From Macrostomum lignano (Eukaryota), in assembly GCA_002269645.1 (NCBI GenBank), contig NIVC01000553.1, forward strand, positions 543,428 to 607,427: 64,000 nucleotides of DNA, read 5' to 3'. Position 1 is the first letter of the stretch, and the number at the start of each line of letters is the position of its first letter. A program made the position numbers and the translations under genes. Positions 10,554 through 64,000 of this stretch are shown here, piece by piece. The notes beneath the pieces were generated by a model. The model did not search any database, was not told where the DNA came from, and saw only the letters and a list, made by a program, of their open reading frames with translations.

Positions 10554-10942
10554 ATGACAGGTTTGTTGTTGCAGCTGTGTTTCTTGTTGCTATGCCAACA
10601 CGCGCCAGTCGGTCGCTGCCTGCTTCATCGGAGCTGCACCAACCGGCTCAGTCTGTACGTTGTGGTACCCAGGTGCACGGCTTACTATGTGAATGCGGCC
10701 CTGATTGACCCGGCTTACCGGCTGGGCTGGCGGGCGGTGCAGAGACGCCAGTCCGAGTTCCATCCGCTGCTTACTGGCTCCGGTGACAGAGCGGTCAGCC
10801 ACCAGTTCATCTACGAGGATGTCAAATGGTACGAGAAAGTCCTGGAGGGTGTGACAGACGGTTCAGCGACTGATGTGGAGACGGTGGACCCATACTACCT
10901 CAACTACAGGATGAACGCCTACTTCTATAATGTTTCCGTTGG
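10554..10942 (+). CDS. Receptor guanylyl cyclase variable cassette A, exon 1 (signal peptide and start of ANF-receptor ligand-binding domain)
   Basis: MTGLLLQLCFLLLCQHAPVGRC is a hydrophobic leader, followed by LSLYVVVP..IDPAYRLG. Donor GTTGG|GTGAGT (phase 2) joins exon A2 in frame. Confidence 0.72.
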
Positions 10943-10975
10943 GTGAGTCTTGCGTTCGTTTTATGCGGGGCAATG

Positions 10976-11680
10976 ATGACGAGAGGAGGGGAGATGTGGG
11001 GAGAGGAGATGCGAGGAGAGGATATGTGGGGAGAGGAGATGTGGGGAGAGGAGATGTGAGGAGAGGAGATGTGGGGAGAGGAGAGGAGATGTGGGGAGAG
11101 GAGAGGAGATGCGAGGAGAGGAGGAGAGAAGTGGAGAGAGGAGATGTGGGGAGAGGAGATGTGGGGAGAGGAGATGTGGGGAGAGGAGATGTGAGGAGAG
11201 GAGATGTGGGAAGAAGAGATGTGGGGAGAGGAGAAGAGATGTGTGGAGAGGAGGAGAGATGTCGGGAGAAGAGAGAAGTGGGAGGAGGGGAGATGGGAGT
11301 GGAGAGAGGAGATGTGGGGAGAGGATATGTGGGGAGAGGAGATGTGGGGAGAGGAGATGTGAGGAGAGGAGATGTGGGGAGAGGAGAGGAGATGTCGGGA
11401 GAGGAGAGGAGATGTGGGATGAGGAGAGGAGATGTGGGGAGAGGAGATGTGAGGAGAGGAGATGTGGGGAGAGGAGATGTGAGGAGAGGAGATGTGGGGA
11501 GAGGAGAAGAGATGTGTGGAGAGGAGGAGAGATGTCGGGAGAAGAGAGAAGTGGGAGGAGGGGAGATGGGAGAGGAGAGGAGATGTGAGGAGACGAGGAG
11601 GAGAACTGGGGAGAGGAGAGGAGAAGAGGGTCGTGTGGGGAGAAGAGGAGAGAAGAGGACAGAGACAGGAGAGGACAGAG
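10976..11680 (+). repeat. ~15-bp GA-rich minisatellite (GATGTGGGGAGAGGA)n
   Basis: Tandem units immediately after the cassette A exon-1 donor. Confidence 0.93.
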
Positions 11681-12040
11681 GTAGGTGAGCAGAGATACTG
11701 AGCCTGGAACTGTGGAGCTGAGTGGGGGGGGGGCACTGTAGAAGCCCAGCTGAGTAACCAGCAGGGATGATCATCAACTCAATGTGCTGAGACTCGGATA
11801 ACGCACTTCTTTATATCCAAGCTTCTGGCGGAAGCACGTTGAGAGCAGCGAATAAGAGCTCATTCCAGACCTCATCAGCCACCAGTCGAGTCCAGTCTGA
11901 TTACTCAATAATTTATGTACGAGTAGCTTGTTGCATCGGCTGGCAACTCAAGAGTTAATAAATACACTATTATCAAACCCTTCCAGTTCATGTTGCTCCA
12001 GAGTTTGTGGGGAAAATCGGGGAAATGGGGAAAATAGTTT

Positions 12041-12853
12041 GTTAGTTAGTTACTTAGTTAGTCATTCAGTTAGTTAGTTAGTTAGTTAGTTAGTTAGTTA
12101 GTAAGTTAGTTAGTTAGTTAGTTAGTTAGTTAGTTAGTTAGTTAGTTAGTTAGTTAGTTAGTTAGTTAGTTAGTTAGTTAGTTAGTTAGTTAGTTAGTTA
12201 GTTAGTTAGTTAGTTAGTTAGTTAGTTAGTTAGTTAGTTAGTTAGTTAGTTAGTTAGTTAGTTAGTTAGTTAGTAAGTTAGTTAGTTAGTTAGTTAGTTA
12301 GTTAGTTAGTTAGTTAGTTAGTTAGTTAGTTAGTTAGTTAGTTAGTTAGTTAGTTAGTTAGTTAGTTAGTTAGTTAGTTAGTTAGTTAGTTAGTTAGTTA
12401 GTTAGTTAGTTAGTTAGTTAGTTAGTTAGTTAGTTAGTTAGTTAGTTAGTTAGTTAGTTAGTTAGTTAGTTAGTTAGTTAGTTAGTTAGTTAGTTAGTTA
12501 GTTAGTTAGTTAGTTAGTTAGTTAGTTAGTTAGTTAGTTAGTTAGTTAGTTAGTTAGTTAGTTAGTTAGTTAGTTAGTTAGTTAGTTAGTTAGTTAGTTA
12601 GTTAGTTAGTTAGTTAGTTAGTTAGTTAGTTAGTTAGTTAGTTAGTTAGTTAGTTAGTTAGTTAGTTAGTTAGTTAGTTAGTTAGTTAGTTAGTTAGTTA
12701 GTTAGTTAGTTAGTTAGTTAGTTAGTTAGTTAGTTAGTTAGTTAGTTAGTTAGTTAGTTAGTTAGTTAGTTAGTTAGTTAGTTAGTTAGTTAGTTAGTTA
12801 GTTAGTTAGTTAGTTAGTTAGTTAGTTAGTTAGTTAGTTAGTTAGTTAGTTAG
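12041..12853 (+). repeat. (GTTA)n microsatellite
   Basis: ~800 bp near-perfect tetranucleotide run. Confidence 0.99.
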
Positions 12854-13296
12854 TAAATGAAAGGTTAGCCCTAGTTTTCGCAAGTGCATAGAAACGTCTG
12901 TGCAGGTGTTGGGCGGGAGCCTGCCTGCACCGGTGATCCAATTATCCCTTTGCTCGTAAAGGATACTTCGAGTCATTCCGAATGATGCGGCTGTCGCTTG
13001 TGCGAGACGTTGAAAATAATTAAAGACAGAAATTTAGCTCAAACTGCAGGCCGCGAAAATTGCGGCGGGGCATTTGGAGTTCTCAAGCTCTTATCCTGCT
13101 CTCAGCTTCGGGAGAACGGCTAACCAGGCTGCTGTGCTGTGGCATTCACGAAATTTTGCAGTTCATTTTTATCTTTTAAAAGTTCGATTAATTATGTTTT
13201 TGGATCATCTGTAAAGGTTCTAGTAGAAAGAAAAGTAAAGTGTACACTTTGTTGTTCTCAAAAAGCTAAAAGTCTAAAAGAATCCATCTAAAAGAA

Positions 13297-13440
13297 GGGA
13301 TAGCCAAGTGGCTAGAGCATCGGACTCACGACTGAAAGGTCGGGAGTTCGACTCTCGACCAACTCGGAACAATTTGCGTCCTTGATCAAGACACTTAACT
13401 CTGCATTGCTTCAGTTCACCCAGCTGTAAAATGGGTTTCA
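13297..13440 (+). mobile_element. tRNA-derived SINE with CORE(MIR)-like central domain
   Basis: A box TAGCCAAGTGG and B box GTTCGACTC, then TGCGTCCTTGATCAAGACACTTAAC...CAGCTGTAAAATGGG, which resembles the CORE-SINE consensus. A (CAT)n tract follows. Confidence 0.7.
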
Positions 13441-13488
13441 GCATTAGCTGGCGTAATTGAGGATGTGTGGTGACCCCCTCCCCTCCTT

Positions 13489-61990: not shown

Positions 61991-61998
61991 CTTCACAG

Positions 61999-62157
61999 AC
62001 AAGCTGTGGACAGCCCCGGAGCTGCTCAGACTGCCGAATCCGCCATTCGAAGGCACCAAGGAGGGCGACGTCTACAGCTTCGCCATCATCTGTCAGGAGG
62101 TGATCTATCGGAAAGGCGTGTTCTTTCTGAGCGACTCAGACTTTATCGAGCCGCAGG
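61999..62157 (+). CDS. Constant exon K5 (kinase-homology domain)
   Basis: KLWTAPELLR..GTKEGDVYSFAIICQEVIYRKGVF. Phase 1 in, phase 1 out (CAGG|GTGAGT). Confidence 0.95.
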
Positions 62158-62305
62158 GTGAGTAGCGTACACTAAAAACCATGCCACCAAGATTCCCGAA
62201 AAACTCTACCATTTAAAATCGAACGCTATCAATTATTTAAAATCCAAATGGATTAGTTTTTCCAGGAGAAAAGAGAACATTACACAACTAGAACCCCCTC
62301 TACAG

Positions 62306-62766
62306 ACATCGTGGAGCGAGTCCGCACGCCTCAGAACCCGCCATTCCGACCAGCCCTGGTCGAGGAGATGTCCGACCTGGAACCCGACAGGACCGCCGCG
62401 CTCACCGCCATGGTGGAGCTCTGCTGGCACGAGGATCCCGGAGCCCGGCCAACATTCAACGCGGCGAAGAGTAGAATCAGCCGATTCAACAAGACAGCAG
62501 AGTCAGGCAACATCCTGGACAATCTGCTCAAACGTATGGAGCAGTACTCCAACAATCTGGAAAGTTTGGTGGCTAAAAGAACTGATCAATACCAGGTGGA
62601 GAAGAAGAAGGCCGAGGACCTGCTGTACTGCATGCTGCCAAAGGCTGTGGCGACAACTCTGATGCGAGGCGAAGCTGTCACGGCTGAATGGTTCGACTCA
62701 GTCAGCATCTACTTCTCGGACATCTGCGGCTTCACGGCGCTGTCCAGCGAGAGCACCCCGCTGCAG
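62306..62766 (+). CDS. Constant exon K6 (end of KHD, coiled-coil hinge, start of cyclase domain)
   Basis: PPFRP, CWHEDP..RP.F, NILDNLLKRMEQYSNNLESLVAKRT, EKKKAEDLLYCMLPK.VA, VSIYFSDICGFTALSSESTPLQ. Donor CAG|GTAATG. Confidence 0.97.
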
Positions 62767-62816
62767 GTAATGATTGGCAGTTGGAGTACAGCATGATGGA
62801 AGCTCAAAGTCCCAAC

Positions 62817-63869
62817 CAGGGGCGTAGCCATTGATTTTATGGTAGGGGGGGGGGGTACAAAGCCAGGAATTCCACATGTACATGACTAAATTCCTACATG
62901 TACATTATTTTCAAAATCGGTGATGTCACCGATTTTTAGCGCTGCAGGCTTTTTTAGCGCTGCAGGCACTCATTTTAAATCCACAGACAATCATTTTGGC
63001 GCCGCAGGCATTCATTTTAGCGCCGCAGGCATTCATTTTAGCGCCGCAGGCATTCATTTTAGCGCTGCAGGCACTCATTTTAAATCCACAGACACTCATT
63101 TTAGCGCCGCAGGCACTCATTTTAGCACCGCAGGCACTCATTTTTAGCACCGCAGGCATTCATTTTAGCGCTGCAGGCACTCATTTTAAATCCACAGACA
63201 CTCATTTTGGCGCCGCAGGCATTCATTTTAGCGCCGCAGGCATTCATTTTAGCGCCGCAGGCATTCATTTTAGCGCCGCAGGCACTCATTTTAGCACCGC
63301 AGGCACTCATTTTAGCACCGCAGGCATTCATTTTAGCGCCGCAGGCACTCATTTTAGCACCGCAGGCACTCATTTTAGCACCGCAGGCATTCATTTTAGC
63401 GCTGCAGGCACTCATTTTAAATCCACAGACACTCATTTTGGCGCCGCAGGCATTCATTTTAGCGCCGCAGGCATTCATTTTAGCGCCGCAGGCATTCATT
63501 TTAGCGCCGCAGGCACTCATTTTAGCACCGCAGGCACTCATTTTAGCACCGCAGGCACTCATTTTAGCGCCGCAGGCATTCATTTTAGCGCCGCAGGCAC
63601 TCATTTTAGCACCGCAGGCACTCATTTTAGCACCGCAGGCATTCATTTTAGCGCCGCAGGCACTCATTTTAGCACCGCAGGCATTCATTTTAGCGCCGTA
63701 GGCACTCATTTTTGCGCCGCAGGCACTGAAGCAAAATTATTGATTTCCATAACGGGTAACAGGGTTAGGTGGGGTGTGGAGGGACAAAGCATTGGCATGT
63801 CCCCCCCCCACAGCTTTTACTGGGAGGACATGTTCCCCTTGTCCCCCCCCCCCGGTGGCGACGTCCCTG
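62817..63869 (+). mobile_element. hAT-like MITE with internal 21-bp minisatellite, copy 2
   Basis: Imperfect 14-bp TIRs CAGGGGCGTAGCCA / TGGCGACGTCCCTG. 8-bp TSD GTCCCAAC / GTCCCAAT (7/8). Internal (CACTCATTTTAGCGCCGCAGG)n. Confidence 0.82.
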
Positions 63870-63907
63870 GTCCCAATAGTTCCGCAAAGCACCCCTCAAA
63901 TCCGCAG

Positions 63908-64000
63908 GTGGTGACTCTGCTCAACGACCTATACACCCTGTTCGACCGCATCATCGAGCAGTACAGCTGCTACAAGGTGGAGACCATCGGGGACGCCTAC
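63908..64000 (+). CDS. Constant exon K7 (guanylyl cyclase catalytic domain), truncated by the window end
   Basis: Acceptor CCGCAG|[34 protein letters not shown]. Confidence 0.97.

Follow-up and report, generated by a model that had tools for sequence, protein, structure and literature searches.

The stretch of DNA analysed here (hereafter, the window) is a 64,000-nucleotide portion of contig NIVC01000553.1 of the flatworm Macrostomum lignano, and all coordinates given without a locus name are window positions. It carries four types of alternative 5' coding cassettes, named A, B, C (with a copy, C') and D, which lie in tandem upstream of a single set of constant exons, with all cassette and constant exons on the forward strand. 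Judged by the domain content of the conceptual translation, the product of the locus is a natriuretic peptide receptor (NPR)-type, gcy-28-like receptor guanylyl cyclase.

Four cassette types precede one set of constant exons

Cassette A consists of two exons. The first (10554-10942) begins with an ATG and a signal-peptide-like start and encodes the first part of an ANF-receptor lobe in an open frame that runs to a GT donor, and the second (20720-21135) ends in the phase-1 donor ..GCG T|GTGAGT, where the split codon T+TC specifies Phe. Cassette B is a single exon (24220-25429) comprising a signal peptide, a repeat and the N-terminal half of an ANF-receptor domain, and its donor, ..TCT G|GTGAGT, yields Val. 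Cassette C is divided between exons at 33877-34214 and 35267-35622, the latter with the donor ..TCC G|GTAAGA (Val), and both of its exons recur as identical copies in C' (43532-43869 and 44922-45277). Cassette D occupies 48377-48674 and 51814-52236 and ends in ..CGA A|GTAAGG (Ile). A cassette-profile hidden Markov model (HMM) matched the first and second exons of A at 2.5e-7 and 9e-22, respectively, and cassette B at 4e-37.

The coding lengths of A, B, C and D (805, 1210, 694 and 721 nucleotides) are all of the form 3n+1, and every frame is stop-free and initiated by an ATG. The acceptor at 55943 (tttcag|TC) receives all four cassettes in frame, producing ..SRA-F, ..RLS-V, ..KYS-V and ..EVR-I, which are then followed by VVLCADPD. 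In random sequence of the same composition, a stop-free run over 231-403 codons would have a chance of 1e-6 to 1e-10 per cassette, which excludes chance as the origin of these frames. In addition, the N-terminal leader of every cassette places 8-9 hydrophobic residues inside a 10-residue stretch. A preliminary description of this locus, made from the sequence alone, had given the cassette coordinates, lengths, donors and in-frame joins to 55943, all of which were correct at every coordinate, and had assigned each cassette its own ATG and signal peptide; the ATG and a hydrophobic leader are indeed present in all four.

Constant exon 1 (55943-56054) carries the only shared phase-1 acceptor and encodes VVLCADPDTV..DLFS. 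The acceptor was already placed at 55943 in the earlier reading and is borne out, and the end of the exon is here corrected to 56054, with a GTGAGT donor at 56055. Exon 2 (56469-57031) encodes the C-terminal ANF-receptor half and a juxtamembrane Cys motif, and exon 3 (57605-58401) the transmembrane helix (ALYAVVVLLVLICFLTILIFVIY) together with a low-complexity linker and the first part of the kinase-homology domain. This domain continues through exons 4 (58828-58999) and 5 (61999-62157) and ends in exon 6 (62306-62766), where a coiled-coil linker and the beginning of the cyclase domain are also encoded. Exon 7 (63908-64000) belongs to the cyclase catalytic domain and is cut by the end of the window.

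All six frames of the window were searched with tblastn and with two profile HMMs, based on 75 cassette sequences and on 71 constant regions, respectively. These searches returned exactly the known cassette exons, including those of C', and one set of constant exons; neither further cassettes nor a second copy of the constant exons was found in the window by tblastn or by the two profile scans, in agreement with the original remark that the downstream exons have no other copy. The cassettes therefore form a tandem array at 10.5-52.2 kb, all in forward orientation upstream of one constant set, and the same layout recurs at four other M. lignano loci (L001-L004, described below).

The C and C' cassettes lie on a tandem duplication on the forward strand (~29866-38317 and 38317-47936) with a unit of 8.5-9.7 kb whose ends are in satellite arrays. 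The two copies are 98.2-98.9% identical by self-megablast, with 2 substitutions and 3 one-base indels separating them across 4.1 kb of unique sequence, and the exons of C and C' are identical base for base. The satellites bounding the duplication include a ~21-bp unit, arrayed at 30393-33108 and again at 38844-42765, as well as a second satellite at 37216-38314 and 46870-47972. In the near-identical locus L001, C is present once only. The duplication either arose very recently by unequal crossover or was created during assembly, and C' may be an artefact of the latter kind.

The cassette junction lies in the middle of the ligand-binding domain

Positions 2-130 of the Pfam ANF_receptor profile (PF01094) were matched by three of the cassettes on their own, namely A (2.9e-6), C (4e-8) and D (2e-15); the B cassette alone gave no Pfam ANF_receptor match. 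In the constant part, a match to positions 181-352 of the same profile lies ahead of the kinase-homology and cyclase domains. When each cassette was spliced in silico to the constant exons, all four ectodomains gave one continuous ANF_receptor match across the junction, at 4e-36 to 2e-50, and the model joining C to the constant region was a single full-length match at 2.3e-44. The earlier proposal that the cassettes encode the N-terminal part of an ANF-receptor domain is thus upheld by the independent matches of A, C and D, and for B through its spliced model, and the HMM check suggested at that time for the four spliced models came out positive in four of four.

The kinase-homology domain (PF07714, 3.7e-37; PF00069, 2.3e-31) lies downstream of the single transmembrane stretch encoded in constant exon 3. 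Within the window, only the first 60 residues of the cyclase domain are included, and these matched PF00211 at 1.1e-19. A complete Guanylate_cyc domain is present in two database proteins, P0001 and P0002, both of which extend past the window.

Cassette D is the one closest to canonical NPR and mollusc N-termini. The ectodomain formed with D can be aligned over its full length with that of rat and human NPR-A, a domain of solved structure (residues 3-427, E = 1e-58). In this alignment, NPR-A residues 1-208 correspond to the cassette and the remainder to the constant exons, so that the cassette/constant junction corresponds to R208|V209 of rat NPR-A, at about position 180 of 353 in the Pfam profile and in the middle of the ligand-binding domain. 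The domain has a two-lobed fold, and both lobes would mix variable and constant segments. The four N-terminal halves share only 20-30% identity, yet they must co-fold with one constant half-domain.

NPR-A contains the disulfides C60-C86 and C164-C213. A-type cassettes (A and its counterparts at the other loci) have neither of the Cys residues that align with C60 and C86, a pair that is kept in the other types, and they carry an insertion of ~15 amino acids. The Cys in the VVLC motif of the constant exon aligns with C213. At the position of C164, a Cys is found in the B-type cassettes and in the paralogous C-type cassettes, and none in the C and D cassettes of the window. If the Cys residues pair as in NPR-A, some isoforms would have the shared constant Cys in a disulfide and others would have it unpaired.

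Gene models join individual cassettes directly to the constant region

P0001 (1136 amino acids) consists of D, from internal Met35 of its first exon, and the constant region, at 100% identity. P0002 (1278 amino acids) consists of B joined directly to a nearly identical constant region, and is encoded at locus L001 (contig NIVC01001069.1 of assembly GCA_002269645.1). L001 contains, in order, A exon 2, B, a single C, D and the constant exons, and represents a second copy of the window locus, either as a homeologue or as a divergent haplotype.

Joins of the same kind are found at three further, more distantly related loci: P0007 (L004) links an A-type cassette, its exon 1 included, to the constant region, and P0005 (L002) and P0006 (L003) link B-type cassettes to it. 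D-type cassettes are joined to constant regions in P0003 and P0004, and these constant regions are those of P0005 and P0006 bar a few local differences. Models in which one unit per mRNA is joined directly to the constant region therefore exist for B, B-type, A-type, D and D-type cassettes.

P0002, P0005, P0006 and P0007 come from the GenBank annotation, and P0003 and P0004 from UniRef. As the GenBank annotation of GCA_002269645.1 was built from StringTie/TACO and de novo transcripts with TransDecoder and not ab initio (PMC5730564), the join from B to the constant region, which skips C and D, is transcript-derived. The transcript-derived models begin at their own cassette, with the exons of upstream cassettes excluded. 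Transcript origin is established for the B and the A- and B-type models only, and the D and D-type joins are database models. One outcome that the preliminary description had named as fatal to its proposal, namely that D alone is spliced to 55943, has the transcript-derived model P0002 from the near-identical locus against it. Its proposal that four modules share one backbone of transmembrane, kinase-homology and cyclase domains stands on gene models for B and D and on a paralogue for A, and extends to C by inference from conservation; support is accordingly strong for B and D, good for A and inferential for C.

The cassette array is shared by paralogous loci

The three further M. lignano loci, L002, L003 and L004, encode related cyclases with constant exons 57-92% identical per exon. 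L002 and L003 keep the order A-B-C-D-constant and L004 has A-D-constant, with a single constant set at each. Cassettes of the same type are 30-60% identical between loci, compared with 57-92% for the constant ectodomain exons. Across loci the cassettes match their own type best, which implies that the four-cassette array is older than the gene duplications.

All but one of the paralogue cassettes are open up to a phase-1 donor. Each type has its characteristic final exonic base, namely T for A (Phe), G for both B and C (Val), and either A or C for D (Ile or Leu). The constant acceptor is conserved in L001-L004, with the exon starting in TC or TT. At L002, L003 and L004, A-type exon 2 likewise ends in T|GTGAGT, and L001, L002 and L003 all retain the phase-1 G|GT donor of the C-type. 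C exon 1 matches the C-type exons of L001 at 99% and those of L002 and L003 at 55% amino-acid identity. Conservation of the C-type amino-acid sequence between paralogues stops exactly at the donor, beyond which the read-through tails are unrelated and of differing lengths. This speaks for use of the C donor, rather than for a stand-alone read-through open reading frame.

Two repeat features lie within the array. In cassette B, a tandem repeat of a 33-nucleotide (11-amino-acid) unit occupies 24334-24670, between the signal peptide and the ANF half-domain; its ~10 units are rich in Ser, Thr, Ala and Asp and mucin-like. The copy number is clearly lower in P0002/L001, and the paralogous B-type cassettes are without the repeat. 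It is a copy-number-variable extracellular stalk specific to the B cassette of the window gene. Long (ATCT/AGAT)n microsatellites occur at 50379-51344, in the intron between the two D exons, and at 56060-56460, in the first constant intron, and the same microsatellite type is found in the intron of the paralogous C-type cassette of L002 (~51040-52080).

The cassettes are under purifying selection

Selection was assessed by comparing the cassette exons of the window with those of L001. Within the cassette exons, 0.5-1.8% of bases differ, compared with 3.5% substitutions and many indels in non-coding DNA. The changes in the cassettes number 19 synonymous to 5 non-synonymous, compared with ~76% non-synonymous expected under neutrality (P = 2.5e-8). 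Taken separately, B (P = 0.001), D (P = 0.004) and C (P = 0.014) each depart from this expectation, as do A exon 2 and C together (6:1, P = 0.001). A exon 2 is 99.5% identical to its counterpart in L001, with 2 synonymous and 0 non-synonymous changes, and C has 4 synonymous changes and 1 non-synonymous change. The cassettes are under purifying selection, and the neutral evolution that had been put forward as a possible refutation of the variable-cassette proposal is not what the synonymous to non-synonymous comparison returned.

The same switch point is found in other animals

Isoforms from RefSeq sets named "atrial natriuretic peptide receptor 1-like isoform X..", which are computational models and were placed in separate 90% clusters among the database hits, were aligned within species. 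Isoforms of one species have unrelated N-termini of 225-270 amino acids followed by an identical C-terminus of ~830 amino acids. The switch falls exactly before VVLCA/VV(I/M)CA, and the boundary residue varies, as expected for a phase-1 split codon. Spiralians with this switch include Mytilus edulis, M. californianus, M. trossulus, Mercenaria (with four N-termini) and the nemertean Lineus; further molluscs are Argopecten, Haliotis, Ostrea, Saccostrea, Crassostrea and Mya. Among deuterostomes, a search seeded by a hemichordate protein found it in Glandiceps, in three Ptychodera genes, in the starfish Acanthaster and in the crinoid Antedon. Some of the homologues are named "gcy-28-like" in RefSeq. 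The identical C-termini and the naming of the isoforms suggest a tandem order of cassettes in these species as well. In Haliotis rubra the gene extends over ~320 kb, and in Antedon mediterranea over 205 kb, compared with ~45-55 kb in M. lignano, and these larger spans are consistent with long 5' cassette regions.

Two candidate extensions of this pattern were rejected. The insect isoform X sets of Odontomachus and Megachile differ in an internal segment and not at the N-terminus, and are not the same phenomenon. One-to-one orthology between flatworm and mollusc cassettes is not supported either: D is the best-scoring flatworm type for almost every mollusc cassette, no clear orthologues of the A-, B- and C-types occur in the RefSeq sets, and A-type cassettes were found only in Macrostomum.

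A published example of related design is gcy-28 of Caenorhabditis elegans, whose.c and.d isoforms have different ATGs (amplified with different forward primers and one reverse primer) and a shared 3' end (PMC9249223, PMC3842693). Their promoters are separate, at 3.2 and 2.9 kb, and drive broad expression of.c and AIA-specific expression of.d (PMC9249223, PMC3842693). Together with the RefSeq isoforms, gcy-28 shows that the general premise of the preliminary description, that NPR-type guanylyl cyclases are normally one gene with one ectodomain, is wrong for invertebrates. Its further statement that the design was not known to have been described needs qualifying: the two-isoform version in gcy-28 is published, and a literature search of limited coverage found no paper describing receptor guanylyl cyclases in general as a variable/constant-exon design.

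The layout in the window is one compact example of an architecture already present in public annotations across Bilateria, and is not categorically new. We would go further only tentatively. It is a serious possibility, falling somewhat short of an even expectation, that invertebrate bilaterian NPR-type guanylyl cyclase genes are generally small clusters of variable cassettes with one constant region, all built on a single phase-1 intron of ancient origin that splits the Venus-flytrap domain midway. Exchange of the first half-domain would then provide receptors that differ in ligand and cell type, and perhaps mixed dimers, all feeding one cGMP output. This proposal covers flatworms, molluscs, nemerteans, hemichordates, echinoderms and probably nematodes.

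A probable single gene with alternative 5' cassettes, and rival explanations

For the window itself, we consider it highly probable that one gene carries the alternative 5' cassettes A, B, C (C') and D on a shared NPR-type guanylyl cyclase body. In the proposed mechanism, a mature mRNA would start at one cassette, the last phase-1 donor of that cassette would be spliced to 55943, and the downstream cassettes would be skipped. The predicted product has a ligand-binding domain that is half variable and half constant, with the cassette supplying the first ~210-240 residues, followed by invariant transmembrane, kinase-homology and cyclase segments. Each cassette would have its own promoter or other 5'-end-forming site. 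Only the 5'-most cassette in a transcript would contribute, because the cassettes downstream of it are without a 5' acceptor. The introns between the two C exons and between the two D exons would be removed first, leaving no free acceptor for an upstream donor; this order would be needed because splicing of any upstream cassette donor to D exon 2 would preserve the reading frame. Cassette choice may change ligand specificity or expression domain, and we put forward different ligand specificity, cell-specific cassette choice and heterodimerisation as hypotheses.

Several observations speak against this arrangement of one gene with four usable cassette types. Support for the junctions comes from gene models and not from direct RNA reads. 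A model joining C to the constant region is absent at all loci, and the C-type entries in the databases are only the stand-alone read-through open reading frames P0121 and P0122. The model joining A to the constant region exists for the third paralogue (L004) only, with none for the window gene. P0124 (617 amino acids), also from the third paralogue, joins an A-type cassette to part of a D-type cassette and then to the constant region. The internal acceptors of A, C and D could capture upstream donors, and joins into D exon 2 are in frame. The A-type cassette of the second paralogue is frameshifted ~15 codons before its T|GTGAGT donor (L003 2100-2190), which may reflect decay or a PacBio indel. 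Cassettes can also be lost, as L004 is without B- and C-types. Finally, promoters or trans-splice sites for individual cassettes were not identified, and a scan for spliced-leader acceptor motifs gave no consistent pattern. The P0124 model itself could be a mis-prediction or a real in-frame cross-cassette splice product.

An alternative that would yield the same proteins, with another mechanism of cassette selection, is a single long transcript from upstream of A, from which the isoforms arise by spliced-leader trans-splicing onto an acceptor preceding each cassette or by Dscam-like mutually exclusive splicing. Trans-splicing is common in M. lignano: 30-39% of genes receive the spliced leader, which ends in ATG, and ~7% of transcription units are multi-gene precursors. 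An acceptor of the form [T/C]TNCAG lies at 24219, 1 nucleotide before the B ATG, and another at 10574, 21 nucleotides into A, in frame with the spliced-leader ATG. Addition of the leader at 10574 would give M-LCFLLLCQ..., which is still signal-peptide-like. However, the acceptor at B would put the spliced-leader ATG out of frame, and no matching acceptor motif precedes C, or D in the window. In addition, each cassette has its own ATG and signal peptide, as in alternative-first-exon genes, and the C. elegans gcy-28.c and.d promoters are separable and drive different expression (PMC9249223). We regard a single long precursor as unlikely.

A second alternative concerns which of the cassettes are functional. 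According to this explanation, only B, D and perhaps A contribute to receptors, and C/C' (possibly also A at this locus) are relics, or produce a truncated, secreted half-domain protein by read-through or polyadenylation. The C-type database entries fit this explanation, as they are all stand-alone read-through proteins of 249-252 amino acids, the C of the window being 100% identical to a UniProt M. lignano entry, as do the lack of any C-to-constant model in four loci and the cassette loss and decay in the paralogues. Against it, three diverged loci still have C-types with open frames, 43-55% identity and a preserved phase-1 G|GT donor, and the conservation of these cassettes gives way at that donor to unrelated tails of different length. 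The ratio of 4 synonymous changes to 1 non-synonymous change relative to L001 and the full-length ANF_receptor match of C with the constant region also argue against a relic, half of a Venus-flytrap domain alone is unlikely to fold, and the stand-alone C entries come from an older annotation. A non-functional or truncated C thus appears quite improbable.

That the array is an assembly artefact, produced by collapsed paralogous 3' ends or concatenated haplotigs, is very remote, as the A-B-C-D-constant order recurs on the independent contig of L001, the layout of cassettes followed by a single constant set recurs in three diverged paralogues, and transcript-derived models reach from B over C and D into the constant exons, although the satellite-bounded C/C' portion, with only 5 differences in 4.1 kb and a single-copy counterpart in L001, is possibly an artefact. 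The concern raised at the outset about assembly collapse therefore carries very little weight for the overall layout.

Neighbouring features

The window is rich in satellite repeats. Upstream of the array, at 3147-5333 on the forward strand, lies a Ras-family small GTPase gene of at least two exons (PF00071, 3e-28), with an intron filled by a ~21-bp minisatellite (3456-4720); the match is consistent with the earlier identification of this gene as Rab5. Within the 9.8-kb intron of cassette A, the reverse strand contains a 423-amino-acid open reading frame (16493-17764) with a YIDD-like motif, which looks like a retroelement remnant and gave no Pfam match.

Implications

The ligands of invertebrate NPR-like guanylyl cyclases are mostly unknown, and the usual assumption is that each gene stands for a single receptor. 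If the proposed design is correct, the receptor repertoire would be several-fold above the gene counts, with ~14 heads on 4 backbones in M. lignano. Experiments on de-orphanisation, knock-down and expression would then have to take isoforms into account, as RNA interference against the constant exons would remove all heads. The exchange of half a domain is also a natural experiment in the modularity of the Venus-flytrap fold. The switch point is apparently conserved all the way from flatworms to echinoderms, which points to an old, overlooked feature of this receptor family, and, if general, the design would constitute a receptor-diversification system that resembles protocadherins and UGT1A in its logic and has not been described as such. 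M. lignano is a practical species in which to test these proposals, being tractable to transgenesis and having loci that are compact relative to the 200-320 kb found elsewhere.

Comparison with known systems

The flatworm receptor has the same domain order as vertebrate NPR-A (NPR1/GC-A), with an ANF_receptor domain, a transmembrane helix, a kinase-homology domain and a cyclase domain. To our knowledge, no vertebrate NPR has an array of alternative N-terminal cassettes. In C. elegans, gcy-28 belongs to the same receptor class and, like the flatworm gene, combines alternative starts with a common 3' end; its isoforms have separate promoters, as is proposed for the flatworm cassettes. Two N-terminal classes are described for gcy-28 in the papers cited above, whereas the flatworm has four types in tandem, repeated in four paralogous genes; this comparison is one of layout.

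The closest parallels in exon arrangement are the clustered protocadherins, UGT1A and the chelicerate sDscam genes, which share with the flatworm locus tandem arrays of paralogous 5' units with their own starts and a single acceptor, and which use one unit per mRNA, as is proposed for the flatworm (PMC1885805, PMC9258826). Units of the protocadherin, UGT1A and sDscam clusters are also gained and lost in a lineage-specific manner, as are the flatworm cassettes (PMC1885805, PMC9258826). Like multiple variable first exons, all cassettes in the window have their own start and a donor that is frame-compatible with one constant acceptor. The single exon per unit of the protocadherin/UGT1A type is found only in B, with two exons each in A, C and D. 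With three of the four cassettes in two exons, internal acceptors must be bypassed, unlike in variable-first-exon clusters. Furthermore, the flatworm junction cuts through the middle of a globular domain whose halves must co-fold, whereas the variable exons of protocadherins and UGT1A encode complete domains, and the flatworm array is small, at 4-5 units. The locus is best regarded as a variant of the "multiple variable first exons" architecture in which the cassettes are multi-exon units and supply half a domain.

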